Shown here: positions 6,749-63,272 of the stretch, piece by piece | Position numbering within the stretch: position 1 is the first letter of the stretch | How the letters are laid out: each line of letters opens with the position of its first letter | From: Dimorphilus gyrociliatus | Taxonomy: Eukaryota; Animalia; Annelida | Assembly (NCBI GenBank): GCA_904063045.1 | Contig: CAJFCJ010000008.1 | Span: 1,364,001-1,428,000 of the forward strand | Direction of reading: 5' to 3' | Length of the DNA: 64,000 nt | Program-made: the position numbers and the translations under genes | Notes under the pieces: generated by a model | The model's database searches: none | Told to the model about the DNA's origin: nothing | Seen by the model: the letters and a program-made list of their open reading frames with translations, nothing else

Positions 6749-7744
6749 TTAAGGTTTTGCCTTTACATAAGTATAATTAATGTTTCCGTCATCATCTACA
6801 AATTTTAGAGTGACTTCATTTTCGCACACATGAACAGCCAAAAAGCCAAAAGCATCTTCAAATTTTTCTAATGTGATGCCTTCTTGTTGAAGAATTCCTA
6901 CGTGATCCTCATCTAGAAAATAAGGGAATGCTCCACCTGCTCCGTTTACGATAAATTCAGTATTCGTGTTGTTCATAAATTTCAAATGTTGTAAGTTATG
7001 ATCATGACCAGTGATAAAGAGATCGACATTATAGCCATCGTCAGCAATAGGTTGTAATATATCTCTTTTAATAGTATTTTGAATTGGCCCATGTCTACCT
7101 GCACTATAAACTGGATGATGAGCAATTACAAATGTCCAATGCTCTTTATTTTCCAGCGCACTTTTTAGGAATTCTGTTTGACTTTCAGGATTATTTTCTT
7201 GAGCTCTAAATGCTTGAGAGTCTAAAACAATGAACTTTATCTTCTTATTGTTATATAGTTCCTTTTCAAAAGTATACCATAAGTCAGGAAAGTACCATCT
7301 TGATTCATTTCTGCCAAACTCTATCTGAAACCATTCATTTCCATTTTTCAAGCCATAATCATGATTTCCTACGGAAATATACCACGTTAGTTCTTTCAAC
7401 GAAGGTTGATTGTAGACATCTCTCCATTTTGAATCAAACTGCTCATCAGTTGCTGATTCTACTCCATCGGGATAAAAATTATCACCACTAGTTAATACGA
7501 AATCAACTGGATTTTCATCGGCGTATTTGGCCATAGCTTCAGCAATAGGAAGCTGTCCGATGCCTGTAATCGCACCCCAATCTCCGATATTAATAAAATC
7601 AACACATCCATTTTCTTGCCCCTTGCCTGTGAAGTCAAATAAGTAACTTTAAAACAATCTAGATATTTCTTCTTATAAAGAAATTTTACTTAGAACTGTA
7701 ACGGAAAAACTAAGAATCGCTATAAAACATTTAAAGAGTCGCAT
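6749..7744 (-). CDS. ACP5: Secreted purple (tartrate-resistant) acid phosphatase, 310 aa; exons 7744-7690 and 7626-6749
   Basis: All metal-ligand motifs of the PAP/ACP5 family occur in order: GDWG, GDNFY, GNHD, AHHP, GHDH. Exon 1 encodes the signal peptide MRLFKCFIAILSFSVTVLS. A 63-nt phase-1 GT-AG intron (7689-7627) joins the exons in frame. Confidence 0.92.
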
Positions 7745-18307: not shown

Positions 18308-21300
18308 ATGGAGAGCGCATTGCTGCCATTACTCTTTCTTTCCTCTTTGACAATCGGTAGTACTCAGAATGAAGGTAAGAACTATTGCTAATCGTATTAT
18401 ATCAATATATAATTACTGTATTATCTAAAAATGTGGACTGTAAAAATTTAGTCTAATTATAAAAATATATTCGTATGTGATCGTCATAGAACATTTTATA
18501 AGCTTCAAAATCTATGCTAAGGCATATATTATCAACTTTCAAACACAATTATAGGTACTAATTAATAATATTGGAAAGATACGGACAAAACTGAAAACAT
18601 ATAATGCATTTATATATAAACTGAAATAGATTTAAGTATGGCATATATACAGTTTATTATTAAGATATATATATATATATATATCTGAATATTCTACTAT
18701 GTTAATTATAGACAATTCTTTCATTTTATTAGACAATGAGATAAAATGAATAAAACAGATAGAATTCTAGTTATAGTATAATTAATAAAAGTTTTTATAA
18801 AATGTCGGTGAACTAGGTACTCTCTAGGTAACATCTGTTGGAAAATTGTAATTTATTCTCAACTGCTTTCTGCTGTTTATTATGGCGTATTTCTAATTTT
18901 ATTATTTTTATTTTTAGATATTTGAAATAAGAGTAATTAGGACACAAAAATTCTCTTCTATTTAAAAGAATTCACTGTTAAAAAAACCAACCTCCCTTAT
19001 TTGCCTCCCACCCTCTTTACTCATCCGATTTTAACTCAAGCATTTAAGATTAATTCTTTTGATTCTTTCCCAGTTTCCAGTAAATTTTTTATCATTTCCT
19101 TTTATTCTTCAAAACCTTTTATAGTGAAAATATTCATAGGATACTTAGAATTAATTGTTGATATCGATAACAGATAGTTGATAACAGTTAAGATTATTTA
19201 TTAGTTGTCTCTCTAAGAATTATTAAGATAGGTGATTTGATTTGCTTTCTTTATCCCTTTGCTTCTATCGATGTTATAAAAATATTACAAGAATATCAAA
19301 TCAGGCCTAGATACTGGCCAGATTATTATTTTTTCAAACTGGATATATACGAAAAATCACAAATAGACCATCAAAAATTTTTCCTATATTGTTTGAACAG
19401 AGTGGCATAGTTGATGCTGATTTCCTGCGTTGCTGCTAAAATATACACACCTTTAGGCACACAATCCAAGATTTAGGTCTTATCTTACGGAAATGAGATG
19501 CTATTTGAAGACGATTGAGACGTTCGGTATTATAGTAACATTCCCCTTTAGGAATTAGTAGTGAGAATCTATTAACTTTTTCATTTCCTTCTCTCTCTAA
19601 ATAAATCTACTTAGTTTTAACCAGAAATCTACACCAACAGACGGCTGGCGCCAATTATTCTTAGCATAAACATTAAACAATCGATGTAAGCCTAACTCTT
19701 TTAACCTTATCTAGGGTTAAAGCAATAAAGCGTTAATAAATTAGCTGATTCGTTATTAACCTAGTAATAATATTATACACAAACTTATGAAGTCTGAAAA
19801 AAGGGCGAGAAGCTTCTTTTTAAATATTCTCTTTTTAATGGCCTCTCCATTATATTATTGAGGGAAAACGTATCATTTTAGTGAACATGATAGATTATAG
19901 GAAAAATTAATGTTCCGTCCAAAAGTATGATATCAAAGAGTATTTAATATCTTAACATACTGGAAAAATTTCATATACTGAGTCGTAAATTTCCCTAATA
20001 TCGTATAAAATTTAAAGTTGACCTTACGAAATCCTTAATGTTTATTTATCTGTAAAGAAAAAGTGAAAATTAATGAATTTAGTAAAATGCTGAAAATTTG
20101 TTGAAAAAATCAGAATAAAAAGTATAAGACTCACAACTTTTCGATTCTATTTGATTGAACCAAATCTGAGAGTATAAAATACATATATGTTTGATTTCTT
20201 TATTCTTTTCTTATTTTACAGTTCATTCATTATAAATGTTAACTGAATGCTATAAAAAATATGCACAATACTATAAATTTTATCTTATATGTCCTCTTTT
20301 TGCACATATACTGCATATTTTTTCTTTAATTTTAGTGTCCTTGTATGGAGATAGTTCTATTAATCTACCACTGCAAAGTAGTAGTGAAAATAGCAAATTA
20401 CACATGTCGTTCAGAACAAGAAGAAGAAACTGTGTTTTATTCATAGCGGCAGGTAAAAAGGATTACTTGATCCTATCACTAAAAAATGGTCGACTTAATA
20501 TACAAATTGAGATGGGAGGAGGAGAGACAACATTCACTAGCAATCCGCAAGTCAAATTAAATGATCTTCAATGGCAAGATATAACTCTCAGTAGATCCAA
20601 AACGGATGTTCATTTGACTATTTCCAAAGTACAAACGGCAAATTTTGTTACCAAAGGCGAATTCTTTAAACTGGATATAGACAAGGGTGTATTTCTGGGT
20701 AATACAATTCATCATATGCCATCCATTACTAGTGGAGCTTATCGAGGATGTTTTAGGAATATAGTATTTAACGATGTTGAAATTTTAAAGGAATCTAACA
20801 GATCATCCCATTCACTTATTGGCGTAAGTTGGGAATGCTCTCCAGAATTACTGGCGAATAGTCGGACACCTATTAGCTTCATGCAAAATGCATCATTCTT
20901 AGCTTTGCCCTATAATGCAAACAGAAAGACTCTAAAATTGAACTTTGTTCTAAAAACAAGATCGGGGGAAGCTATTTTATTTTATATGGCTGAGAAATCT
21001 CAATACAAACTTGGAGATTTAGCAGTTTTAGAATTGAAGTGAGTGATTTAGAAATAATATTTATTAAATTCAATCAATGTGCTAAAAGTAGACAGGAAAA
21101 GAAAAAGTATCGTTAAAACTCTCGTACTAGTCTTTTTAAAATTACATAAGCAATATTATAAGTTATATATAGCTAATAAAAGAAGACTATTCTCTACTGG
21201 TTTTTTTAATGAAAAGGTTACTCGGTATTAATTACGTCTTCTCTCGACTCTTCTTTTATCAATAAAATTTATTTACGTTACTCTAAATAAGGAATAGTAG

Positions 21301-24300
21301 AAAAGATTATCAGAGGACTTGTTTGCTGTCTTTCTCAAGCTTCGTCCGATTGAAAGAAAAAGCTAAGCTAGCTTTCTTCATATACCAAATTTATCAATAT
21401 CTCATTTTCACTTTATAAAAGGGAGACATGGTTGATAAAATACAAATAATTATTCACAATTTTTCACATTGCTATGTATGCCTTCCTTATTCAGTTGACA
21501 AGTCACGTTGATTTTAGCAGACAGCTGTGTAACTAGCATATTTAAAAGATACTTTGATTAGTTTGCCATGACAAACTTCACGATAAAAAAGTGATGATTT
21601 ATTAGGGTAAACAAAGCTAAGAGTTTGCGAGAAACCGTTTTAGTCCAACATTGTACTTCTACATTTTTCTAATTCACTCATTAGCAATGGAAAATTAAAC
21701 CTAACTGTAAATAAGGGGCATGGAACAATATATGTATTATCCGAGGAGAAAATAAATGATGGAAGGGCTCATAATATCATGATTGCTGTAATGGCTGACT
21801 CAGTCGAATTGAATGTAGATGGGAAAGAGATGAAACGTCGTGCTAAGTTTATGTACAATAAATTCCTAGATATAGATGAAAAGGTTCTATACATCGGAGG
21901 GTTATCGTTATCAGCCCGATCAGATGCTATCAGAATAAATCTGTTATCAATAAGGGAACCCAATTCTCAATATGGCTCGATGACAGGATGCATCAGCAAC
22001 CTATACATAAATGGCTTGAGAATGGGTTTTGCGGAGGCGGTAACATCTAGATTTCTAAGGCCAGAGTGTATTTGGACTTACGCATGCGCTGATAAACCCT
22101 GCAGTTTGGGAAAAGTTTGTAAGGAAATATCATACTACGATTACATGTGCGTTTGTGAGAATGATAGGCCTTGTGACTCTGAAAATAACAAACCTACATT
22201 TCTTCCTAAGCAATTGATACAAACGCAAACAGTTAATGTAAGAGAGGGAGAGAGAACTGTACTTACTCCAAACCACATTTCACTTTCTTTTGACCCAAAA
22301 ATGCTTGGTTTAAATTTGGAAAATATTATTTATAGAATTATCACGGCAGCCAGATACGGTAGAATAAACGTTGATATCCAACCTGGAATTTTATCTCTTA
22401 AGAATGACTATGCTTTCACTGCTGAGGAGTTGAAAGATTCAAAAGTCACTTACATACATAATGGGTCAGAAAATAGAGCGGACAGTATAGATTTTTCGGC
22501 AGAATTTAAAACTCATTCACCCATGAACCTTCCTCTCCGCTTGAAAAAGCCGTATTACTTCACTCTTAACGTTCATATTACCCCGGGAAATGATCCACCA
22601 AAAATTATCATTACTTCATCTATTAAAATGATAAGATTCACAAAGATTATTTTGACAAAAGATTTAATGAGGGCAGCTGATAATGATAACCCACCGTCGT
22701 CACTTATTTGGAGGGTTAAGAATAAGACGCCATACAGTGGTTTCTTTGAATTAAACGAAAGGAGTACAGATACATTTACTCAGGCCGATATTAATGCCGG
22801 TAGAGTAACTTATTCACACCGAGGTGAGAAAAAAGTATATATCAGTGTTCAAGTGTCAGATGGTCAGCAATCTACTACATCAACTTTGAAGATAGAAGCT
22901 CTGCCACTAAAATTAACATCCGAAAATAATACCGGCTTATATTGCTACTCTGGTGATATTTTGGCAATAACATCTCAAAATCTCTCGTTTACGACAAATG
23001 TGGTCGGTCAGCATTTTGATATTGAATACGTAATTTTCGACGCACCACTTTATGGACACGTCGAGAAGAGAGAAGACGATACTTGGAGAGCTACTTCCCA
23101 CTTTAAGCAAAGCGATATAGATAATGGATTAATACGGTATAAGCACGATATAAAATATCCTGCTCCTAAGAAGGACTCTTTTAAATACTACACGAAGCTG
23201 TTGAAAGTGGAAAGCACTGAGTATAACTTCTTTATTCATATTGAGTCTATTGTTTTAAAGCTTAAAACGAAATCTCTCGATCTACGTGCTGTTGGTTCAA
23301 TAGTATTAACAAACAAACATATAAAAGCTGTCAGTAGCGTTTTACAACATAAGCCTAGTGATTTAAAATTTTCGTTAATCAAGCCACCGAAAAGAGGCTT
23401 TTTAACGCTAGACAACGCTAAATTAGATCAGAATTCCTCATGGACACAGCAGGACCTTAACGATGGAGCCGTTGAATATCGTCTAAACAACGCTTTATTT
23501 AAGGAGCAAAAAGATGAATTCGAGATAAAAGCCTTCGTAGATAGAAATTCCAGCTCTGTACACAAGCTGAAAATTGCCTATAGGCCTATTGAGAAAGGTG
23601 TTAAGTATGTAAACACTGGATTAAGAAATGTAAATGAAGGTGGAAGAGGGAATATAACAATAAAAGAATTAAGTTTAATGACTATCGATACAAAAAAATT
23701 TGTCTATTCCCTTGTCGAACCTCCAATGCATGGAAGGCTATACCTAGTTGGAAGCGAGGATTACTACTCTAAATCTTTTACGACGGATGATCTAATAAAG
23801 AAGAAGCTTTATTATGAACACGACGATAGTGAAAATGAGATCGACGAATTTAAATTTAGAGCCACTCCTCTTCAATCTGAGAAAGAACCTAGACGAACCA
23901 AAATTAGTAACTTCACTGATACATTTATCATTAGAATGAAAATGAAAAACGACGAGAAGCCTCTCAGAACAAAATCAAAAATTCTTCATGTAGTTCAAAA
24001 TTCTAGTAGAATATTAACACCTGAAATACTCACTTATGAAGATGCAGATCTGCACACAGATAATACTCAACTGCAATACTCTATCAATAAGAATGATTCA
24101 GCAATTGGTTATCTGATCAGATCATTCGACAAAACTAAAGTATACGCCTTTACGCAAGATGATGTTAATAAAGGACGAATAGCATTTGTACACACTGGAA
24201 GTTTTTCGACTGGTAGATTGGTTTACACAGTGACAGATGGCCAATCTTATACGAAGGGCGCTATTGACATAGAAGCCTCAAAAGCTTTAATCAAAATAGA

Positions 24301-27300
24301 TAATAATACTGGTTTAGCTGTTTTCAAGGGTCAAAAAATAATAATTACAAATTATAATTTGAGTGTTACTGGTAATTTTGATCTCAACTATTCAGCTGTC
24401 TATTTTAGAATAGAGAGACGACCTGATCATGGTAGAATTCTTAAATTAAATGAGCATACAGGGAAGTTTACTTTTGCAGATATTCAAAATCGTTTAGTAT
24501 CTTACAAGCATTATGGAAAAAATCTAAAAGAAGATTCTTTTGATTTTGCAATTTACTCAGGAAAACTAATGGCTAAAGGAACATGCGAAATTCGTGTTTT
24601 TTTAAATGTTGAGCAAATGCCACCAAGAATTATTGCCTTAAAATCCCTAAGGGTTTACGAACAGGGGAGTAAAATAATAACAAGAGATATCCTAGAGATT
24701 CAACATTCTCAAACATTACCTAATGAAATACGCTATAGAGTTGAAGTTCATCCTAGACACGGCAGGTTATTACTCAAACGCGGTCGGAGAGGTGCTAGAC
24801 ATAATCCAAAAACTTTCACTCAGCAGGACATAAATGATGAACTAGTACTTTACGAACACAGACGGAAAGGCAGCAATAAGGATTCTTTACGATTTAGGGT
24901 CAGTAATGGAATACGAGCAATTAATACTGAACTTATAATCAACATCGAACAAATGTTAATACCTTTTGAGCCTTCTAGAGTCTTACAAGTCCAGGAAGGA
25001 AGTTATACTGAATTAACAAGCGATCTATTTAAGACAGATTCTCTAATTGATTTGGATTTTGTAGTAGTTCGACAACCAATTCACGGTAAAATATATTATC
25101 TTGGTAAGCGAGACATCAAAATATATCAATTCAACTGGAATGATATTCAAAGAAACGATATATCATATTTACATGATCACTCCGATACTATAAAAGATAA
25201 TTTTACCTTGTTGGTTAAAAGAAGCAGGAAGAATGTTCAAACGTCCGATCCCACAATCTTTCATGTCGAAATAAAGAGCTTGAATGACAAAAGGCCTCAA
25301 CTGAATGTAAAAACTATTAAATTTTGGCATTTTAGAAAAACAGTAATTGGAAAACGTCATATCCACGTTAGAGATAAAGATACTAAGCCAAAATTTCTAA
25401 CAATATTTATTCTGGATGGATCAGACGACTGTTGGTTTGCGTACAAATTTCAACCAAATGTAAGATTAAGTAATTTTACTCAACATCAGATTAACAAGGG
25501 TCAAATTATTTATGTTCATGAAAGTACAAGTTCCTCGGCTAGCTTTACCCTAATAGCAGCTGACGGAAAGCATAGAACTCAGAGAAAAACACTAAAGGTC
25601 AAGGTTAAAAAATTAGAATTAACATTACAAGTTAATGAAGTGATATTGGCCTTCCCCCTTGTTAAAACGATCTTAAGCAGTAAAGATCATCTAAAGACCA
25701 TTACAAACGATATCGATAATGCAAGAAATATAACGTACAACATTCAATCAAAGTTCAAACACGGACGACTTGTAAATCTACAGGATCAGGAGGTAACATC
25801 TTTCCAACAATATGACATAGACATGGGGAATATAGCTTATAAGCATACAGACGCCGTAAGAACAATGGACAGAGATGAGGCCAAAATGGATATAAGTACC
25901 CCATTTGCTCAAGATTTGGCTCATACGCCAATATCTGTTCGAATATCCTACAACTTTTTGACAAATCAGAATCAAGCCGAATTAATAAAAATTAAACCAA
26001 TAATAATTAGTGAAGGTGAATCATTTGTCTTAAAAGATCACTTCGATGATACCATGCTGGTTAAAAAGATTTCCGATCCAACTTCTATAATGTATGGAAT
26101 AAAAAGTAAACCATTTCATGGAGTTTTAACAAAGAATAATAGAAATATCTCAACTAAAAGTTCATTTTCCAGAGACGATTTATTATCTGGGCGGGTAAAA
26201 TATATTCACGACGATTCTGATACTACAAAAGATAACTTCACTTTAGTCTTGACAGCAGATTATAAAAAAATTAGTTACAACACAAAAGGATTAGGAATAG
26301 TTATTCATATAGACATCAAACCTATCAATGATGAACCATGGATTCTCTTAAATACTAATCCTGAAATACACGTAATTCTTGGTTTTACTTCAGTTGTTAA
26401 TCAATCAACTTTTAACATAAAAGACCCTGATACTGAAAGTGATCAAATCATATATACAGTAACTGAGAGACCTGATAATGGCTATCTCGCCTTCGAGAAT
26501 TCTCTAGATAAAGAGGAACTTACTTGGACACAGAGAGATATTAATAGTCAAAGATTAATATTTGTTCAAAATGGTCGCCCTAAAACAGCAGCTTTGCAAG
26601 TTCGGGTATCGGATGGTGGAGTACATAGACACGCTGACCATATTGCGTGCATAATTACTGTTCATCCATTAACGTTATCGATAAATCCTCGAAATTTAAA
26701 CAACGTAAAAATTTTGCAAGGCAGATCAGCCATTGTTATCACCAAAGATAATATTTTACCAAAGACGAATGGAATTGCCAATATAGTTCAGTATAACGTA
26801 ACAAAACCCCCGAAATACGGAAAATTATATTTAAGAAATACACCTGTATCATCGTTCTCTCAATGGGATGTAAACAGAAATCTTTTAATGTACGTTCAAA
26901 CAAACTTGTCATCAGGGAACGATTCATTCATATTCGACGCTTATGATGAATATAACGAAATAGCCGGTAATGTTTTGAAAATATCGATTATATCTCAAAT
27001 CACCGTAAAGGACTTCCAAGCCGTTTCTAATCAGCAAATGCCTATAACTCTTGCTCATTTAAACGCTGCTAACCTGGCAAGTTTAACTAACGATGATCCT
27101 CTCTTTCGTATTATCAGTCGACCCCGAATAGGCTCATTAAGAATGAGGGGAAGCCCAGAATCCGTATCAAAATTTAAACAACAAGATCTTGTAGAGGAGA
27201 AAATATTTTTCGAATCTTACACGGTTTACGATCTAGAGAAAGATAGTTTCATTTACGAAGTTTCTGCAAGATACGCTCAACCGGTTAGAGGTATTTTTAA

Positions 27301-27706
27301 CATTACCATCTTACCAACTGCTCCAACAACTGCAAAAGCCCATTTAAGCACTCTGTCTACAGAGAGAGACCAAAAAACTGACAGTAAAATTAGACCCACG
27401 CCCAGGGAAAAAACAGATAGTGAAGAAGAGTCTGACTCTGTTAGTCAGGGACATTTATTAATTGTTATAATTGTTTGTGCGGTAGCCTTGGTTACTATAT
27501 TAACATTTGTAATAATTAAATGTGTAAAGATGCGAAAGAAGCAAAAACAAAATCAAGTTCCAACTAGAAAAGAAAGTGCAAGTATGCTAAAGAAAGAGGA
27601 GTGTAGCCAAAAAACGGAAAGCGACTGGCAAAAGGTTGATGCTGAGTTGTTGCAGCATTGCAGAACTACTAACCCTGTTTTGCATACGAACAAGTATTGG
27701 GTCTAG
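18308..27706 (+). CDS. CSPG4: Chondroitin sulfate proteoglycan 4 / NG2 / kon-tiki (perdido) orthologue, ~2263 aa; exons 18308-18374, 20336-21038, 21685-27706
   Basis: Signal-peptide exon (MESALLPLLFLSSLTIGSTQNE), two laminin-G domains (starting VSLYGDS), a Cys-rich EGF-like linker, many CSPG/cadherin-like repeats (PxHGxL...FTQxDIxxGxxxYxHD), one TM helix (LLIVIIVCAVALVTILTFVII) and the C-terminus NPVLHTNKYWV, resembling human NPALKNGQYWV. Splice phases 1 and 2 are consistent. Confidence 0.95.
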
Positions 27707-42310: not shown

Positions 42311-43348
42311 TCAGTAAGACATCTCCCTAGAAAGGGATCGTGATCTGATTAGGGTACCTGATCTACTCCTCTCATAACCCAATTGAGGTAATCGACCTTC
42401 TAAATCATTTGGGTAAGAATGTAAAGACTGCATTTGAGTACCGGTTGAATATTTACGGGCTTGATTCTGAGATCTTCTATCTAATAGAACTGGCTGAATA
42501 TCGGAAAATACTCTGTTAAAATTGTTTTCTCTATTTGACAATTCCATTTTATATCTAGCAACTTCATTTCTTAATTTATCTATCTCATCATCCTCATTAC
42601 CGTTAAAATAAGAATTTCTTCGATCATTCGTTTGTTGACTTTGTTTCTTTAGAAGCAGTTGCTTTTTTACTCTTTTAAGATCGTTTTCCAGTTGTTTGAC
42701 TTTGGCTAACAATTGCTGTTTAGATTTTTCGTTATCGACTAAGCAATTTCTATATTTTTCGTTTTCTCTTCTTAATTGATCGATCAGTCTTTGTAAATCT
42801 AATCGATCTCTCTCAGAACTTTGTTGTGAATCTCTTAATTCCTTTTCCAAAATTGAAATTCGACCTTTTAGCTTTTCATTCTTTGCCGTAATTTCTTCGC
42901 ATTTCCCCTGATTCTTTCTTAAGTCTTCTGTTTTCAATTCTTTCAACTTTTCAACATGACTTTCAGCTTTATTTAGTAATACTTTTATCTCATTACACTC
43001 GTTTCTTCTTTCAGAAGCTAATACTTCTAAATCATTAATCTTTTCTTCTAACTCTTTATTTCTAATATTTAAAAATTTAACAGCTTCTTCGTTTACTTCT
43101 TGTTTCTTCCTGTCTTGTTTTAATTCTTTTGCAAATTGTAACTCCTGATATTTGGTCTTGTAAACGCTTATTCTTTCATCAGATTCTCTGAGAACCCTAT
43201 TAATTTCTTCTTCGTAAGCTTCTTTTGTCGCCTCTAGTTCAACTTCCCTCTCATGGTTTCTCGTGAATAGCATATGAATCACTTGAGTTAGCTCTGCTAC
43301 TTTTTTACACATCCGGAATTCGAATGGTCTTTTATGTAGAGCAGCCAT
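42311..43348 (-). CDS. FAM184: FAM184-like coiled-coil protein, 345 aa, single coding exon
   Basis: N-terminus FEFRMCKKVAELTQVIHMLFTRNHEREVELEATKEAYEEEI resembles the FAM184A/B N-terminal motif (KMSKKIAQLTKVIY...AHEEEI), followed by a long heptad coiled coil. A splice acceptor (43353-43352) sits 3 nt before the ATG, with GTAAGT donors at 43394 and 43420. Confidence 0.75.
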   Translation of the reverse strand: MAALHKRPFEFRMCKKVAELTQVIHMLFTRNHEREVELEATKEAYEEEINRVLRESDERISVYKTKYQELQFAKELKQDRKKQEVNEEAVKFLNIRNKELEEKINDLEVLASERRNECNEIKVLLNKAESHVEKLKELKTEDLRKNQGKCEEITAKNEKLKGRISILEKELRDSQQSSERDRLDLQRLIDQLRRENEKYRNCLVDNEKSKQQLLAKVKQLENDLKRVKKQLLLKKQSQQTNDRRNSYFNGNEDDEIDKLRNEVARYKMELSNRENNFNRVFSDIQPVLLDRRSQNQARKYSTGTQMQSLHSYPNDLEGRLPQLGYERSRSGTLIRSRSLSREMSY

Positions 43349-48135: not shown

Positions 48136-51100
48136 ATGGAATCCTCTCTAATCCTCAATCACGACGATTCATCCTCTGAACTTCCGGAAGAATCCTTAGA
48201 TTTGGAATACGATGACTTTCCTTTGGATTTAGTAGGCCTACCGACCTTCGATTACAATTCAGATTCTTTCCATATAGACGAAGAAGACGACGTCTGGCAA
48301 CCAAACAAAGTTCAAACTCCACTTAGAAGCTCCACTTCAGGATATCAATCGAATAGGAATTCATACTTAAGTTCAGTTTCAAAAAATTCACAAAGGAATT
48401 CTGTAGTGTCGACAAGTATCCGAGAAGCTTATGCTTTAGACAACGATATTGTTTTTTACAACAATGACATTCTTCGAACAGTACAAGACTCTATAGGCCT
48501 GGATACTGATTCACGAACATTATTAGCTCCAAAAGTGGACAATAAGGATGATTACGAAATAACAGTGATAACAGAAAACCGAAATAGAAAAGGACATTTT
48601 CGATGTTTTACGAGAATCGCTAAATTTTTTTTAAAAAAATACCATCCGCTGCAAAAAGACTGTAGCAGATTTGAAAAAGTTAAATACCAGCTCAGATTGC
48701 CGCCAACTGGAAAATTATCTCATTTTCTCTACATAATTCTTTCTCTTACAATTCAGTGGGCTTTGACTTATATTATATCACCTAGAGAGGCGGCGCCCGG
48801 AGGAAATATCTTTGCAATTTTAGTTCTAATTACTTCCTCATGGGTTTTCTCAAAAGTGTTCAGGCTGTTGACTTTACCAGGATTTCTCGGTATGTTTAAA
48901 AAAAGTTTTTTATTGATAGTATTTTAAATCTAAGACATAAAAAATACGTACTCAATTTAAAAGATAAGCTAGATCATTGAAGGTAACAATATAATTAATT
49001 TTATTGTACTATCAAATTCAGCAATTAGTAGAATTCATTTGTTTTGTATTCAATCTCATTCACTGAGCACTAAATCTAATGAAACTAGGCTGAAGAATTT
49101 GATATCAAATATATACAGTATACAGATGTGTTGTGCTAACAAATATTTTCACTGTTTAAAATGTATATATACCGTCAAAAACATATTCTCTTTTAATAGA
49201 GACAGTTCATTTATGATTGCATACATAGTATTGTTATCTTCATATAATTATAAGTATTATTAATTATTGATTTTTAACCCTAACATATTAAAGTATTCTA
49301 TCAATGATTTATTTGTTTAAATATAATTCGTACTTAATTCTCCGTTTTTGCAACATTAAATTAAAATATTAACTGTAAATTTTTTAAAATGCAAATATTA
49401 AATGGTGAATAAAACAAATGAAAAATAAAGGTAATAAGAAATCAAGAAGAATATTTCATAAAAAGCAATAAATAATTTTAATAATTGAGATAGAAATCGT
49501 TTTAGGAAATTTTATTTGCTGCAAAAAGGTACATATGGTTGTTTATAATAAAACATTAGATATTCTTAAATATATACAGTGTATAAATATTTCAAAGAAA
49601 AGTAAAATTTTTAAATACAATTCTTATCTACTATTTCTTGTAAATTGTATGATATATTGATAAACTAAGTCTATTTTTCTACATGATACATATTTGATCT
49701 GAATCAAACAAAACGGCGCTCGAACATATCTATCTGTATATTGTTTTCTTCGAGCGTTAATCGATAAAGTAGAGCTTTCAGTAAATTCAATAAAGCAAAT
49801 TAATAGGAGGACACATAAATAATTAACCCGGTCTACATATATCACCCACAGCAATCTAATACTTGCTGTAAAAATTTACATATAAATTATAGGCTAATAA
49901 AAGCTGTTACAATCTTTTCCCTTTTTGGCAAAATTTTCCAATATATATATTAAAATAGTTTCCTTAAAAAAAATAAAATTAAAAAAACAATTTTTAGTCA
50001 ATAATTTTTTTAAACTTATTCACATTTCTCTTTTCACTTGCACGATAGTTACTTTATAATTCGAGAATTTCAATATACACGAAAAAAGACATAAATTGCC
50101 CTACATGAATGACTTAAAAGAGCACGAAGACAATTGCTAAATAGCTTGAAATAAATAATAAAATAAACAAACCATATTTGAAAAACCAACTATTTATAAT
50201 AACATACGCTGATGGATTAATGTTTAATATGATCATATCTGATATATATATATATATACTGTATATATATCGTATATATGTAAATACTATATAAATTATA
50301 GTCTCAGTACAGCTTTCAATTATATGCTTATTTCTTTCTCTCTCCAGGTATGCTAACGGCTGGTATATTAATTGGTAATATTCCATTATTAAAAAATACG
50401 GTTTATGATGGCTTAAACAGAACCGTTATTTCTATAATAAGGTTAGTGACGACAGCTAAACATTTTACAGCGAATATTCTAAAAATGAATGTGATATCTG
50501 CCTGACAATATGTAATTTTTATCATTATGGTATTTGTCAAATAGTAAACCTATCTTGCTTCGGCTAAAAATGAACTCCACCCGTTAAAAAAAAGGAAAAA
50601 AAGAGACGTATTGACTGAAAGACTTGCTATGAATAATAAAGAGATTGTTAATTTCCCATATTGTGAAACTCGAGAATATACAAACAATATTATGTGGTTA
50701 CTTTATTAATTAATTTGCTTAATGGTAGAAAAGTGGAGAAAGAAGAAAGAAAGAAAAGAGTAAAAAAATAAACAAGTAAATAAATTAATTATAGATGAAG
50801 TAACGCCCTTTCTTACTATTACCAATATAAAAGTGGCGCAAAAGAATTCCTCTCCAATCCTTTAATCACCCAAACAGTTGCCTTTTGAAATGAGCTTTTA
50901 TATCTTAACAAGTCGACCCTACAATGTAAAAAAGAAGAGCCAAAATTGCAAAAGTATAAAATACGAAGGATTTTTGTAAAAGTAAGAATATCATAAAGTT
51001 AAATTAAGAAATCGATCAATTTAGATACCACTGGGTGTTTACTGTGTAAGATTAGAAATACTGGAAAACTGCAATGGAGCCTGTCAATCATTAACTTATA

Positions 51101-53330
51101 AAATAGTCGTTTATACTTTAATTAGAAGTCTTGTCCGGAATGAAACTAGAATCTTTCAATTCTAAACAATGAAGCAAAAATACAAAAGAGCCAAGAGATA
51201 GGATATTGCACTAATTCTTGAATTTCAACAGTTTTATGCTAAAGCTCTCTTCTTATTGATAACTATGATTATAATTTCGTTATTCCTTTCATTAAGAGAT
51301 TGTAAAACAATAGGAAAAGAAAGAAATTTATAAGAACTTGGTCATATATCGATTATAAGAAATCCACAGAAGAAATAATATTATTCATATTATACGATTT
51401 CCTTTTTATTCTTAGCGGGATGTCTCTATTGTTATAGGGGAAAAAGAGATAGAGAAGACTTTTGTAATCAAATATAAAAAAAAAATATTGTTTCAAGAGG
51501 AAGAAAAAATGGTCTGTAAATAAAACGAAGACGAATCAATGACGTTTACAAGTGAGAGAGTATCTTTAATTTCCTTGTTCTGATTGTAGTTCGTTTTATC
51601 TTCCTTTAACGTCTCGCATTTCGTTCGATTAGCGACGAGAAAAGGGATGCTTTATTGATCTCTTTCGTTATTTTCTTGTTAGACCGATTCCGCAGCCTAA
51701 AAGCGTCACGTTTTATTTGCAACAAGGAATTCTTTGACCAAATAAAAATTTAATCGATAGTAATCTTTCACTTAGAGAGAGAAAACAACACTTAATTAGC
51801 AAATTTGAATGATAACTGGGTTTTAAAGAAATAGAAAACTAGATAAATCGTAGTTTTGCTCCTCTGCTCCAGTTTAGGAAAAGAAACATAGTTATACTGT
51901 ATATACAGTATATTCAGTATATATATAAAAATGATATAAAATGGGCAATATTATATCTTCATATCATAGATTGGTTTACATTTAGAAAATTGCCTTCAGG
52001 AGAAAACTAACTCAATTTTGATAATGAGCTCAAATGACCGGATATTATTCGACTAGCTGGACCACTGATTGAATGTCAGCAAAGATTTCAAGATCTTAAA
52101 CTTAATGCTGCAGTAGAGACTATTTTTCAAAATCAGTAAATTCTCTCTTATGAATTAACAAAAAAGGAATATTACATGAAACAGAAGAAGAAAATTTCTC
52201 TTTTTTATATTTAAAATCTCATCCCTACTATTCCACATCCAATTTAAATGTGTTCGGAAATTTCCCAAAAACTTCCAACTTAGTTAAACAATTAACCGTA
52301 TGTAGTTGGGCGTCAGTCGATCACTTAACCGTTTCTATTCTGTTGACGTCAACTACACATAATAAACCAAAATGAGATTTATACGGATAATCCTTTATAC
52401 GAATATTGACCGTCTCCATAAATAAAAACAGAAAAAAAAATAGGGGAGAACGATAAGTGTTTCGTGAAACCCGGAAGGAAGGGAGAGAGGACTGTGAGAA
52501 TGGAGATGGAAGTTTTTTGAAAAGGACAATGAACAAGAGCTACTAGACGCTTTTAGGTGACGGGAAATACGGGTGGAAAATAGTCGATTATAGCCGAAGC
52601 TGATAATTTTTCAATGCTAATATCGAAAATCAATTGTAGGATTGTTTAACAGATTTTCCTCCAATTTTTTCTTTATTTCAGTCTTTAATTTTATTTTCAT
52701 CTCAAAGGCAAATGGCTTTGGCTTGTCTGCTGCTCAAAATGGGACAAACGTTTGATGTAGGAACGTTGAGAAAACTAACATATGCCGTTCTTCGTCTAGC
52801 AATTTTTCCGGCTTTTAGTGAAATTACGTTCGTTACTGTTACATCCAAATTTTTACTAAACTTTGGATGGTTAAGAGCCGTTTTATTAGGGTAAGAACAA
52901 GTATTATAAACTTGATTAAAGCCACCAAAGTAATAAATTAGCCAAAGAAAACAATTTATTGTTTTAATTAAGAATGTACGTTATCTAAAAAACATTAAAC
53001 AATAAAAAGATAAAAAAATTTTCCTTGAATGGAAGAGATTTTCCCGCTTTATTTTCACCTTTTCTAGATACGATTAAGTATTGAAAAAATATAGAATTCG
53101 TAAGAAATACCAGATTTTCCATTTCTCTGCGTCGACAGATCTTAAAGCAGGCTTTATGTCTATAGTGAAGTTGCACTCTTTTTATTTTTATTTGTCAGGA
53201 AAAAAAAGAATGCTTCGCTCCATCGAACGTATTAATATATATTTTCGTAAGAACGAGCACGTATTACACTGACGCCATTGTTGTCTCAGACAATATATAA
53301 TATATACAGTATATGTATATACAGTATATA

Positions 53331-53364
<34 letters not shown>

Positions 53365-56300
53365 CTTAATAAGTGCAGTAAAAATAAATTATCCTCTTTT
53401 CCTTTAAATTGGAAATTCCCCTTTAAAAACATTAAATTTACCTGTATGAAATGTTAAAATTATAAAATTCTTCTATATTTCATTAGAAAATTAATTATTT
53501 TGGTGGTTATAGTCGCTTAATATTTCCAATTTATCAATATTTTGCAAAATAAACATTTTCCAGTACAATTCTATCACTATCAAGTCCGTCAATTATCTTA
53601 CCGACTTTATTTAGAGTTTATAAGAAATGCTTAAATAAACGTCAACAAATATCAAGTATTTTAATAGGATCCTCAAACCTCGATCATTTGATTATCTGTG
53701 TAATTTTATCAATTTTACTTGGAATAACATTTTCAGAGCGTTAGTTTATAATTTATTTAAAAGTGATAATTCTTTTTACACTAAAGTTTAATATCATTGG
53801 ATAACAGAAAAAAAGCATGCATTAATAATACTAGAAGGACCCTGTGAACTCTTAATTGGTTCGTTGTGCGGAATGATTGCTAGTGGTGTACTGGCCTATT
53901 TACCTCATAAAACGTCCGTAAGTATAACAATTTTCATTTAGTTGTTTCATTTTTATACTGCAGCCTCTAAAAGAATATGTATAAATCAAATAAAAAATAT
54001 ATACAATATTAGCGATATCATTTTATGAAATAAAAATTTATAAATTTAAATTAATAATAACAGAGCCTACTTGGCAGCTAAATGAACAATAAACATCATA
54101 CGTCTTTTATTATAAGGCTCAGTAAATGGCCCTACATTTATTAGTTTATCTACGGATACAATTGTAAAGCGTCTTTTCCTTAAAAAGCAACATATTTAAA
54201 AATTTTATACAAGTCTATATACGTTTGGGTCTGAGATCGGAGGACACAAATAATTAATGCTTTGAAATGACTATAAATAAATTTTCTAAAGTTTAATTGA
54301 TCCAATTTTTCTGCTTAAGGGATTACATTAAATGACAAAAGGAACGAGTTAAACGCATAAAGAAACGAATCCAAATGCTTAGGTCGCTTTTTCCTGCTTA
54401 TTGCTCTATTTTTTTCTTCATTTCTTATAAAATAAGCTTTTTTTAAAATACCTTTGTAATCGAAAGTTTAATTAGACAATTAGGGCTACTTAGATAATCA
54501 GAAGACGAGACATGTTTGTATTAAAATATACAATGAGACTATTTTTATAAAATGCTCCCCGAGCCTTATGCTGATAATGAGGCCCTATACTATATTAGAC
54601 ATATTGTAGGGGAAAACTCTCCCACCCAAATTGACGCTTGATTTTTGAATTTTTTCCTCTTTCTTTTTTTCAGAAAAATTTGATAATTAAACGATTTATA
54701 ATTCTTTTTTGTGGTTGCTTATTGAGCACAATTGGATGTCAACAATTCTCTTTTTTTGGAGCTAGCCTTTCTTCCTGCTTTTTCCTGAGCTTTCTATGCT
54801 CATTCATTTGGAAAAATGATAATTGTAAAGATCATAAGGTATTACAACTTTAAAAGTTCCTCTTGTTTGCATTGAAATTGATATATTAAAGAACTTTAAA
54901 TCTTTGCCTTTTAAAGATAACATTTATGAGGCTTCATGAGAAATTTTCATCCTTCATACTTTTGATACAATTATCTTTAATTGGCGCTGAAATTCGGTTG
55001 GATGGTCTCAAAAAACAAATCGGTTCGCTAATAAAACTAGCACTTTCATTATCGCTTAATCAATTCCTTACTCTTTCTTCTTCAATTACGTTCAGGTTTA
55101 TCGACATTAGTAGTTGTAGCAGGACTGATTGGCCGTTTCCTAACTTCTCTCTTATCTCTTGTAAATTGTGGAATAAATTGGAAAGAAAGAATTTTTATAT
55201 CATTAGCCTGGCTACCTAAAGCCGTTCGTCATGTAAGGAAAAAGAGTTAAAAAATAAGTAGAAATTATAGACACAAAGTTTATCTTCATATTTTATTTCT
55301 TTTTTAAGTCAATCCTTGCTATAATGCTCATCGATATATCCGATACGAAACGATTTCCTTCTATTGAATCTGACATACGAAAGGTTTGTATTTCGTTTCT
55401 TAATAGTTGAATTATGGAAAGGGTAAAGCAGTGGAAAATATACAATTTTTATATAACCGCCAAAGATAAATAAATATACATTATTGCGAGCAATCGTAAG
55501 CCTAAAATGCCACGAAATCCGGTTAAAACGCCATCTATGTCTGATATTTCCTCGAGGGAATTTGAAAGTGCTCCTGTTTGTAGCATGATAATGTAAAGAT
55601 ATGACCCATATAATCAACTACAAAAATGAAAAATTATCATTCAACTGAATTGTATCACTATAGTAACGCAATAATTGGCAAAAGTAAAAGACATTTCGAT
55701 CTATCTTTGGATAAAAATCTAGCTGTCCTTATAAAAAAATTACGATATGAATTACTAGAGTCATATCACGCAAAAGCAAATCCATTAATTGGTTAGAAAC
55801 CAAAAGGTATATGATTCTCCTGTCCTACATTTCTTTATTTTTGATTGATTTTATCTTCTATGTCATTTTATGGATCAAATATGCGCAAAAAAAACTGTGT
55901 CACTCTACATATAAACATAAACTACGTTTAAAACTATTACCTGTTCACCTTCATACTTATTATTTTGCTAGAATTCATTAAGTACAGTGTAGTTACAATA
56001 TAGCTACTCAAAATTTGTTAGAGGACTTAATTTGCTATTTATCCTGATTTAAATTATAGTCTTTTAATCCGCTCTCACCTTAAATTAATCTTTTATGTCA
56101 CTTTACCCTAAAGAGACCTTTCACTAGGTGTATATCATGAAAATAAAAGGGGTAAGCCACAGTAAGAAACAGTAAATATGGTTTAAAATGTTATTGGCTT
56201 TATAGATAAAGAAGTTGAACGGGAAATTTAATATATATTTATGCTTATGTATGTTTTATATATAAAAAATTACATATCATATGAATAGAATCCAGTAGAA

Positions 56301-56861
56301 GAATAGGTTTTTTACTTTCTGCTTATGGATAAAGAAAGGCATAGAGGGTATATTGTGTATCGCCCTATTCTATATCAATTCGAAGTCCATATGGATATGT
56401 TACATTCCACTACGTCACTTTGAATACAGCATAATTGAATATAATGACTTAAAATTATGTAGTAAAAAATACTCTAGATCTCTATTATAGACCACAAATT
56501 GCTAATCCTTAAAGTTTGCTAGGACACCAAAGGGTTCACTTCTCTATGAAATTAGGTATTAATGGGCGATATTGCAGTCTTTTCACAAAACGTCACCGAA
56601 ATTTACTGAACGTGACTTGAAAGTATTGAAAATGAATTGTAATTCTCATCATAGTATTAATATTTGCAGATAACTAATACGTGCTTCCTCGGCGTCCTCT
56701 ATACTTCATTACTTGGACCAATTTTAAGTATAACTGCCCCGTTTATGTTGAGGAAAGCGCCTACTGGTAACAGAGCGGAAACTAAACAAAGCGTTGAAGA
56801 AGTTATAATAAACAGACATACTGAAAATGAACTTTTAACGGAGAAAGAAACAGTTACGTAA
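48136..56861 (+). CDS. SLC9B: SLC9B/NHA-family (CPA2) cation/H+ antiporter, divergent, ~663 aa. Exons 48136-48889, 50348-50441, 52708-52890, 53564-53739, 53808-53917, 54674-54838, 54917-55022, 55096-55232, 55309-55383, 56670-56861
   Basis: Ten phase-consistent exons give a 1992-nt frame. Segments align with NHA2: PGGNIFAIL, LPGFLGMLTAG, RQMALACLLLKMG, LRLAIFPAFSE, SSPSIILP, LIGAEI, GRFLTS, KERIFISLAWLPKA, LLGPILSITAP. Confidence 0.9.
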
Positions 56862-57089: not shown

Positions 57090-59418
57090 TTATCGTTCCA
57101 ATTCCATGGTTACCACTTCAGATCTTTTTGTATAAGGAGAGACATGAACAGTGATAAGCTGTCCAGAAGGGGTTTTAGATAGAGAGTGAGCATGTAATCT
57201 GAAGGCTGCCCCACTTTTATCTACGGGTATAATTTGTGAAATAGTTTGTGTTGAAGATTGCAGACTGTAGAAACTCCCAGTGGAGGCTATTAAGGCATTT
57301 CCGAATTTATCCATAAAAAGTCCTTTGGCTGAGGCAGGTAATCTTGTAGTTTTCAGCATATCGCCGTCATAGGAGTAGATCCTTAATTGTCTATCACCAT
57401 TTCTGGGTTCAAAAGTCAATCCGATATTACTACCTGCAAACATATACTTGTTATTTGAAATTTTTGAAATTTTCAATCAATAGCTGGAATAAATAGTAAA
57501 TGAAGATTTTGTCTTAATAATACTAAATTGAAAAGAGGGAATTAAGGAGATCAGCTATGAACCATGAAATTTTGTTAAACAAAAACTGATTTATAACAGA
57601 CAATCAATATATCTAATATAAAATTACCTTTCCAGTGGACACATCTACATCCATAGTGCTTGCTTAGCATGCACAAATAATAAATATATAAGAGTAGGAA
57701 ATATTATAGTATTAAACACTTACTCCTAAGGCATTGGATACACAGTATTATTATTAATAAAGAGGAGATCAGCCTTAGCAGAGCGTACAATATTATATAC
57801 TTAGAACATTCAAGTCACGAAGTATTTTATTATGCTTTAAACTAATGGCCTATTCTTTTAGCTAAAAATAACAAATCTATAGCTTACCTCCAACAGCTAA
57901 ATTAAAAAACTCTGGTAAACTTCCTAAAGGAAAATTTCGTAATTTGCTTCCAGATTCATCGTACACACATAGCGCATGACCTTCAGTTACCACATAACAT
58001 CCATTGATGTCTATCGATAATCCACGTATGCCCGATCCAATAGGAAAATGACTCAAACAATTCCATGATTGAGGAGAATATATTTTCAAAGAATTTTCAA
58101 TAGCTACAGCTATATTACCTGATTCATTAACTAAAATACCAACTGGGTAGTTGATTTCGGTTGACAGAACTCTTTGCTGAAATTTTCCAGACCTGTCACA
58201 AATCCACAAGCCGGAATTCTCAGCATCTGCAATAACTATCTTTCCATTGGATAAAAATGCTAAACCACAAGGTTCTTTAATATAACTGGTAGTTTTAAAT
58301 TTTGATACTATTCTCGCAGTCTGGGGAGGAACCCTTTGGGCTATTTCCGGCTTAGGAAAGCTTTGTAGGGATATTGTTGATATGCTTCTTGCTGGGGGTA
58401 GAGATATTTCCCTTCGAGAGGATATTTCTCTCGGGAGTGGTATACCTGAATCAATATCTTCAGATTTTTTTAATCCCTCGTATACCTTTTTTCTTTTTCT
58501 CGGAGTGGTTTTAGGCGCGGCCTTAACAATAGGAACTTTCGAGGATCTCTTTATAGAATCTAATTTATTCGGCTTAGCATCTTGATTAATAGTCGGCAGT
58601 AAGTTCATTTTAGGATTATTTTCTACTTTACCTAAAGTTTGATTGTTCAAAAATATAATAGACGGGCCACTGAACTCTTTTCTATCCAAAGCTTTGGGAC
58701 TTTGAAAGATTTCAGCCTGCTGGGAGACACGTAAGGCTGTAGCTATAAACTTCTCTTGGGATAACTTATCGTTTCCTTTACGACTTGCGAAATCTTGGAC
58801 TTTTTTCAACTCCTGCCATTTTGTTTTAACAACTTTTTTCCTATCACTGACTTTTTCTAGCTTAGAATCTAAGAAAGAATCTAAGTCTTGTTCAAGTTTC
58901 TCGTGTTGAGATCTAATTGTTTGCTGTAGTTGAATAACGTGAGCATTCAAAGCTATCTTCTTCTCTTCCCTTATCTCTTCTATATTTATTTCTATCTTCT
59001 GTAACCATTCTAATTCTTCGGATAGCGTGGCTGATATTCTTGAAATTTTTGCCATAACTTTACGAAGGGCAGCTTCACATTCAGCAATTTTTTCATTTAA
59101 ATCGACAATATCATGGTTCTTGTGCTCAATCATTGTACAATTGACGCAAATCAATTGAGAACACTTCTCACAAAAGTATCGAACTTCAGCGAAATCGTGT
59201 TTGGAACAATTTTGTTCTACTTTCTTTTCTGATTTCGGTACAACATAGTGATCAGCTGTTACTTTGGTCGTTCGATGTTGATCGCTGCATATTTTGCAGA
59301 GAGGCATTGAACAGTCTGAACAATACATTGGAGCAGACTTTCTTTTGTTCTTTAGCCGACAAATCTGGCATAGTCCATCGAAGTCAACTATATCCGAGGA
59401 GTTTAGCGATTTACTCAT
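57090..59418 (-). CDS. TRIM-family protein (B-box1, B-box2, coiled coil, NHL/beta-propeller), no RING detected, ~640 aa; exons 59418-57888, 57662-57628, 57446-57090
   Basis: B-box1 (CQIC...CSDC...LCKICSDQH...H), B-box2 (CSKH...FCEKCSQLICVNC...EHKNH), a coiled coil, and NHL-like blades (PCGLAFLSNGKIVIAD, YPVGILVNESGNIAV, GIRGLSIDINGCYVVTE). The small middle exon and the last acceptor are inferred. An in-frame acceptor at 59431 allows a further upstream exon. Confidence 0.8.
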
Positions 59419-62075: not shown

Positions 62076-63272
62076 ATGGAAGCTTTTACAAGAGCCACAC
62101 CTCTGAACGCCACGAATGGGACATACGAAATCGAATTTTCTAGCATCATTTACGCATTTATCTATTCTTTAATTTGCGTTCTCGGTACTATTGGCAATGG
62201 ATTAGTGATCATTGTCATTATCAGATACGCTAAAATGAAAACAGTAACCAACACTTACCTGTTGAATCTGGCTATTTCAGATTTGTGCTTCCTTGTTGGT
62301 TTACCTTTTTTAACGGTAACTATTCTTGTTAGGCATTGGATATTTGGTAGTAGTATGTGTAAAATATTTATGATGTGTACGTCTACTAATTCGTTCACTT
62401 CTGCGTTCACTTTAACCGTTATGTCCTTCGATCGTTGGCTGGCTGTTTGTCACCCTGTTAGGTCTATATCTTATAGAACACCTTTGGTTGCAAAGTTTGT
62501 CTCAGTCGGAGTATGGGGCTTATCTATGTTAGTAATGATACCCGTTTTTCTCTATTCGACGACAGTAACAAATAATCCTGGAAATCAAAAAGAATCATGC
62601 AAATTAATCTGGCCCAAAAATCAGGCAATTATTCACCCTGATAAAGCGTTCATTTGGTACGGATTACTGCTGGGTTTCGCCATTCCCACCGCCCTAATTT
62701 CTGTCTTCTATATGTTAGTTGTCATACGATTAAAGTCTGTTGGGCCCAAGAATAGGAAGAATTCAGATAATAGGAAGAGAACGCACACAAGAGTTACAAA
62801 ATTAGTTCTAACAGTTATCGCAGTTTATGTTATCTGCTGGTTACCCCATTGGATTTATCAGATTTATTTTACTTTTGCTAAAGACAAACCTCCAGATTGG
62901 GTTATCAATTTGTATCAAGCAATAACGATTCTATCTTATACCAATTCAACATTGAATCCAGTTCTGTATGCTTTAATGTCGGATAACTTCCGAAAAAGTT
63001 TCTCTAAAGCTTTCCGATGCATTTCCAAAACGGAAGTTGAAGGAACACTGAACGTTGAGCCTTCAATATTTCCAAGGAGGAAGAAAAGCAGACCTCAAAA
63101 TAGACTAACCTTAGAATTAGCCAAACAAAAGTCAACATCTAATTTAGAATTACACGAAGAGGCAGTTGTAGAGGCTTTCCTGAATGAAAAAATGAACGAT
63201 CAAGAAGAAAATAACAAAAATGTCTGTTCAGTACAAGAGTCTCCTGAAGGTCGTCTAGCCTGCCAAGTATAA
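62076..63272 (+). CDS. AstC-R: Allatostatin-C receptor / somatostatin-receptor-like class A GPCR, 398 aa, intronless CDS
   Basis: Seven hydrophobic segments with GN (TM1), YAKMKTVTNTYLLNLAISD (hallmark of the SSTR/AstC-R group), DRWLAVCHP, CWLPHW and NPVLY. Confidence 0.9.
   Translation: MEAFTRATPLNATNGTYEIEFSSIIYAFIYSLICVLGTIGNGLVIIVIIRYAKMKTVTNTYLLNLAISDLCFLVGLPFLTVTILVRHWIFGSSMCKIFMMCTSTNSFTSAFTLTVMSFDRWLAVCHPVRSISYRTPLVAKFVSVGVWGLSMLVMIPVFLYSTTVTNNPGNQKESCKLIWPKNQAIIHPDKAFIWYGLLLGFAIPTALISVFYMLVVIRLKSVGPKNRKNSDNRKRTHTRVTKLVLTVIAVYVICWLPHWIYQIYFTFAKDKPPDWVINLYQAITILSYTNSTLNPVLYALMSDNFRKSFSKAFRCISKTEVEGTLNVEPSIFPRRKKSRPQNRLTLELAKQKSTSNLELHEEAVVEAFLNEKMNDQEENNKNVCSVQESPEGRLACQV

Follow-up and report, generated by a model that had tools for sequence, protein, structure and literature searches.

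What becomes of an NHA-type Na+/H+ antiporter when the second of the two aspartates in its ion-binding site is replaced by a histidine? The question is raised by an SLC9B/NHA gene of the annelid Dimorphilus gyrociliatus, located at positions 48136–56861 on the + strand of the window, the 64,000-nucleotide stretch of AT-rich eukaryotic DNA (29% GC) analysed here, to which all coordinates refer. In mammalian NHA2, strict conservation extends to both aspartates of TM6 (D277 and D278, bison numbering), and exchanging the pair for cysteines (D277C-D278C) yields a non-functional protein (PMC8850199). A sequence-only reading of the locus had placed an Asp-His pair at this site, and the codons GAT CAT are indeed present at 53682–53687, where they encode D384-H385 of exon 4. 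The interval that it had delimited, 53564–55232, coincides exactly with the span of exons 4 through 8, and the motifs that it had quoted (LSSPSII, IGSSNLDHLIIC, GASLS, and WLPKAVRH) are all found in the spliced model.

The gene model was assembled from stop-free segments of the + strand, taken in the order in which they occur in an NHA2-type protein and spliced at canonical sites. Ten exons, all on that strand, join into a frame of 1992 nt (663 codons plus TAA), and the hydropathy profile of the product contains about 13–14 hydrophobic segments. Exon 1 (48136–48889) is open from its ATG onward to a GTATGT donor, and encodes an acidic, serine-rich cytoplasmic N-terminus of ~185 amino acids, followed by TM -1 and TM1. 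Exon 2 (50348–50441), which encodes TM2 and reads ...MLTAGILIGNIP..., is bounded by canonical splice sites and aligns to NHA2. Exon 3 (52708–52890) spans TM3-TM4 and contributes R283 and E321, the equivalents of bison R176 and E214 (E215 in human). The Asp-His exon, exon 4 (53564–53739), comprises the Ser-Pro break between TM5a and TM5b and, in TM6, D384-H385. TM7 is encoded by exon 5 (53808–53917), with canonical sites and the frame kept, and TM8-TM9 by exon 6 (54674–54838), in which GASLS stands in place of the GSGGL of NHA2. Exon 7 (54917–55022), aligned by hand to bison NHA2, supplies TM10 and a LIGAE motif in which E519 is kept. Exon 8 (55096–55232) extends from TM11 to the TM12a-b break and carries R543, W568, and K571, followed by V573-R574-H575. 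TM12b and the loop after it lie in exon 9 (55309–55383), again with canonical sites and the frame kept, and exon 10 (56670–56861) encodes TM13 and the C-terminal tail, terminating in the TAA at 56859–56861.

All nine introns are of the GT..AG type, and a search of the 663 codons and nine introns for marks of a pseudogene (stops, frameshifts, and broken splice sites) found none; the frame is intact over ten exons, as the sequence-only reading had stated. Five of the nine introns, within 48890–56669, span 673–2266 bp, compared with a species median of 66 bp. These long introns contain neither a repeat common to the rest of the window nor an obvious nested gene, and could hold candidate regulatory DNA; in this genome, introns with ATAC-seq open-chromatin peaks are reported to exceed the remaining introns substantially in size (PMC7854359).

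Part of this model has an independent counterpart in the public annotation. The public protein DgyrCDS7095 (344 amino acids; window 48136–52893) consists of exons 1–3 with the same junctions: its first 251 residues are 100% identical to the translation of exon 1, and it agrees with the first two splice junctions, including those of exon 2. Residues 166–344 of this protein align with residues 56–238 of human NHA2 (7b4l; E=4e-18), which places E321 on E215, and the match to bison NHA2 is of similar strength (E=9e-17). The aligned part of exon 1 (residues 166–251) begins at residue 56 of the human protein, and includes TM -1, the extra helix specific to NHA2, at model residues 187–215 of the sequence alignment. 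At the other end of the membrane domain, exon 8 matches human NHA2 427–462 (phmmer, E=6e-6), with R543 on R432, W568 on W457, and K571 on K460. The residue offsets of the two anchors, exons 1–3 and exon 8, are consistent and collinear with NHA2, and the FSE, GRF, and PKA motifs that had been listed as retained thus take their expected places through E321, R543, and K571.

The remaining exons are harder to recognize. Searched singly against the PDB, exons 4, 5, 6, 7, and 10 gave no NHA2 match, and the Pfam family PF00999 (Na_H_Exchanger) did not attain its gathering score in scans of the individual exons and of DgyrCDS7095. The gene product is very diverged. In an Atlas language-model search, the nearest clusters to the N-terminal half bear PF00999 (0.93), and the Asp-His exon alone is PF00999-like (0.94), with 26 of 30 matches in a family set led by PF00999. 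Among solved structures, NHA2 is the best and only significant match to pieces of the gene. Judged on its sequence, with similarity over the membrane domain in order, TM -1, and the scaffold residues all present, this is a complete gene of the SLC9B/NHA family by descent.

Set beside mammalian NHA2/SLC9B2 (human 7b4l, bison 7p1i; PMC8850199), the whole membrane domain is collinear, TM -1 included, and the residues that are kept (bison numbering) comprise D277, E214, R431, R176, E406, W456, and K459, together with the Ser-Pro helix break. R176 and E406 form a salt-bridge pair, and W456 and K459 are located at the second helix break. The E214-R431 salt bridge is structural in NHA2, and a K459R mutant is non-functional (PMC8850199). 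Unlike NHA2, the Dimorphilus protein has a histidine at D278, so that one of the two strictly conserved TM6 aspartates is missing, and reads Val-Arg-His at T461-V462-Q463 and GASLS for GSGGL; it has lost W171 as well as the lysines that bind lipid, and its cytoplasmic N-terminus is the ~185-residue segment of exon 1. V573 thereby occupies the position of the TM12-break threonine, T461, described as ‘conserved in all NHA2 members’ (PMC8850199). In exon 4, the AAGSF of NHA2 is replaced by IGSSNL, and the loss of WDIFQP noted in the sequence-only reading takes the form, by hand alignment, of a replaced segment in exon 7 that is ~5 residues longer than in NHA2. The description of the gene as an intact and non-canonical SLC9B/NHA therefore stands: it is intact, collinear with NHA2, and has kept the salt-bridge residues, with a histidine at the second aspartate.

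The assignment of that histidine depends on the alignment of exons 4–7, made by hand against bison NHA2 as its sequence appears in PMC8850199. Extended gap-free from the HMMER anchor G344 (=G237), exon 4 is identical to the bison protein at 11 of 58 positions. Upstream of the pair, S351-P352 corresponds to S244-P245 and P357 to P250; D384 then falls on D277 and H385 on D278; beyond it, L396-G397 corresponds to L289-G290 and F400-S401 to F293-S294. The identities thus flank D384-H385 on both sides, inside TM6, and shifting the pair by a single residue would require insertions or deletions within the helix. Further downstream, the protein gains a residue ahead of TM7 and some five more at WDIFQP, in keeping with the net change in offset between the two anchors. 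A low-identity hand alignment, the collinearity of the anchors, and the language-model features of exon 4 together support H385 as the counterpart of the second TM6 aspartate (bison D278; position 7 of the cation/proton antiporter, CPA, motif), at a strength below that of the anchors to NHA2 themselves. Since CAT and GAT differ by one base, an error of sequencing or assembly at the histidine codon could in principle have disguised an ordinary protein of the Asp-Asp type; we regard this as extremely improbable, as the whole motif is altered (AAGSF to IGSSNL, and TVQ to VRH), and an aspartate at 385 would still leave a non-canonical gene.

The substitutions are not evenly distributed. Identity to bison NHA2, counted by hand, is ~32% in the N-terminal membrane half, ~19–24% in exons 4–7, and ~40% in exon 8, so that the TM5-TM6 core is the most changed region of the protein, and the scaffold positions survive. 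In this protein class, the TM5-TM6 core is normally the best-conserved part. The retention of scaffold residues together with the loss of a site residue is, as far as the alignment can tell, the pattern expected for changed function and not for decay. Our preferred reading, to which we assign a probability of about 0.48, is that the gene encodes a folded NHA-type membrane protein that is no longer a canonical Na+(Li+)/H+ exchanger.

One can ask instead whether a single aspartate might suffice. CPA1 exchangers operate with one Asp, and D384 (bison D277) could be the sole carrier of a working monovalent cation/proton exchanger, in which H385 would tune pKa or selectivity. D384, E321, R543, W568, and K571 are all kept, in agreement with such a protein; Na+ binding in NHA2 simulations was scored as the distance to D277, and the T461A mutant of NHA2 is tolerated (PMC8850199). 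The aspartate at position 7 of the CPA motif, called a ‘fingerprint’, occurs in 94% of CPAs, which leaves about 6% that lack it, but it is also repeatedly reported as essential for transport (PMC6181914). Moreover, the new arginine and histidine beside the TM12 break would make the site more positive, and the usually well-conserved TM5-TM6 core is here the least conserved. On balance, we hold a working cation exchanger to be unlikely.

A different objection to a protein of changed function concerns whether the full-length product is made at all. The public annotation omits seven of the ten exons: DgyrCDS7095 reads through the exon-3 donor at 52891 into intron 3 (52891–53563, + strand), and its C-terminus, ...AVLLG, is formed where GGG is followed by TAA, the first in-frame stop. 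This intron, at 673 bp, is ten times the species' median. Because the public annotation ends after exon 3, the gene might yield nothing but the 344-residue product of exons 1–3, through retention of intron 3 or polyadenylation within it, with exons 4–10 as a recently released remnant that has acquired no stops so far. In building the D. gyrociliatus gene models, transcript assemblies were given a tenfold weight (PMC7854359), which lends some support to the truncated model, and hexamers resembling polyadenylation signals occur 25–110 nt inside intron 3 (at 52915, 52932, 52994, and 53001). AATAAA-like hexamers are, however, frequent by chance in intron sequence of 25% GC. Likewise, the median intron of the species is 66 bp and larger introns are more often retained in its transcript assemblies (PMC7854359), so the truncation of DgyrCDS7095 may be an intron-retention artefact of annotation. 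The supplements of the genome paper (PMC7854359) contain no NHA or SLC9B entries.

The coding signal of the downstream exons bears directly on this point. In the gene's own introns, stop codons make up 0.074 of trinucleotides (7.4%), and the longest open stretch is 96 codons; exons 4–10 contain 320 open codons, for which the chance probability at that stop rate is 2e-11, with 14 splice signals intact. The divergence from NHA2 must therefore have accumulated while the frame was kept, and deep divergence combined with intact frame and splice signals implies that the frame was selected through most of the gene's history. Exons 7 and 8 also still carry scaffold residues, which speaks against a remnant. 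By codon usage, the true frame scores best in all ten exons, with means of 0.10 bits per codon for exons 4–10, 0.22 for exons 1–3, and -0.24 for intron windows in their best frame; six of the seven downstream exons outscore every 150-nt intron window tested, and exon 6 has the lowest score among all exons. The low codon scores and the high divergence of exons 4–7 are also what a remnant would display: relaxed constraint could account for both, and the gene may have been released from selection recently. Taken as a whole, a truncated product with a young relic behind it seems to us rather unlikely, and the observations agree better with a folded protein of altered function encoded by all ten exons.

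The absence of recorded relatives enters the same argument, as none of the predicted proteins in a library of 1.84 billion representatives contains the Asp-His exon, which is compatible with exons 4–10 being a remnant. Searched against that library, at any protein length, this exon returned a spurious repeat protein and no relative. Word searches with exon 1 (proteins ≤439 amino acids) and with residues 185–344 of DgyrCDS7095 (proteins ≤602 amino acids) each recovered DgyrCDS7095 itself and nothing else, and no contigs encoding DgyrCDS7095 are on record. Within the 64-kb window, local tblastn found no second NHA gene, no canonical NHA copy of which this gene would be a paralogue, as the sequence-only reading had called it, and no alternative exon 4 of the Asp-Asp type; the gene region contains no repeats.

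The neighbouring genes are of other families. A B-box/NHL (TRIM-like) gene at 57090–59418 (- strand) lies tail-to-tail with the NHA gene, their 3′ ends ~230 bp apart, and is present in a related species in Logan runs SRR23372228, SRR23372216, SRR23372231, and SRR31984834 (77% protein and ~75% DNA identity); the contigs bearing it there end ~185 bp before the position of exon 10. Beyond it, at 62076–63272 (+), is an intronless open reading frame for a 398-residue rhodopsin-family GPCR (7tm_1, E=6e-66). On the other side, an open exon of 1975 amino acids at 20236–27706 (+) encodes 15 Cadherin_3 repeats (E=6e-186) and is preceded by a Laminin-G open reading frame, the two probably belonging to one large CSPG4/FRAS-like extracellular matrix gene. 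Two further open reading frames lie on the - strand: one at 42311–43348, with a weak FAM184-like coiled-coil match (E=7e-5), and one at 6749–7534, for a calcineurin-like metallophosphoesterase (E=4e-13).

How, then, would an NHA-type protein with an Asp-His pair work? The second TM6 aspartate is regarded as the principal carrier of ions and protons in CPAs. If the Dimorphilus protein adopts the fold of NHA2, with a predicted 14-helix layout, its ion site would be short of one carboxylate and would gain as many as three groups that are titratable or positive. Counted by residues, the site of NHA2 carries a charge of about -1 (two aspartates, one glutamate, one arginine, and one lysine). The Dimorphilus site, with one aspartate, one glutamate, the corresponding arginine and lysine, R574, and two titratable histidines, would carry +1 to +3. 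A change from about -1 to +1 to +3 would make cation binding of the NHA2 type unlikely. The protein might then move protons together with a different ion, for which an anion is the most plausible candidate, or be a non-transporting member of the family. The sequence-only reading had likewise put forward, as possibilities, another substrate, pH sensing, and a transport-dead role. The more specific proposal that an electropositive site, formed by Asp-His of TM6 and Val-Arg-His of the TM12 break, couples protons to the transport of an anion or a transition metal is speculative, and we consider it distinctly improbable as stated.

Partial parallels exist in other members of the fold. In the animal NHAs, the precedent for an anion-coupled mode is Drosophila Nha1, proposed to be an H+/Cl- cotransporter in one oocyte study (Chintapalli 2015, as cited in PMC9174904), a likeness in the proposed mode of transport. 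Divergent CPA taxa with Gly-Glu at motif positions 6–7, which differ significantly from other CPAs (Masrati 2018, PMC6181914), provide another case of a natural NhaA-fold protein devoid of the position-7 aspartate. Unlike these taxa, the Dimorphilus protein reads Asp-His, keeps the aspartate at position 6, and clearly belongs with the NHA2-type proteins of animals. With the bacterial NapA and NhaA (CPA2, Asp-Asp motif), it shares the fold class, and their two-aspartate site is the source of that in NHA2; unlike the Dimorphilus protein, NapA and NhaA are described as lacking TM -1, as having a lysine at position 8 and an acidic helix-break residue, and as electrogenic.

Comparative surveys that start from the public Dimorphilus proteome would meet only the 344-residue fragment, which ends before the ion site. 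The complete gene is a natural experiment, a predicted NhaA fold without its canonical carboxylate, in which the scaffold residues are kept and an arginine and histidines are added at the site. It is relevant to a point under dispute, namely whether certain NHAs of animals do something other than Na+/H+ exchange. If anion or metal carriage were true, the Na+/H+ antiporter fold would have changed its class of substrate in nature.
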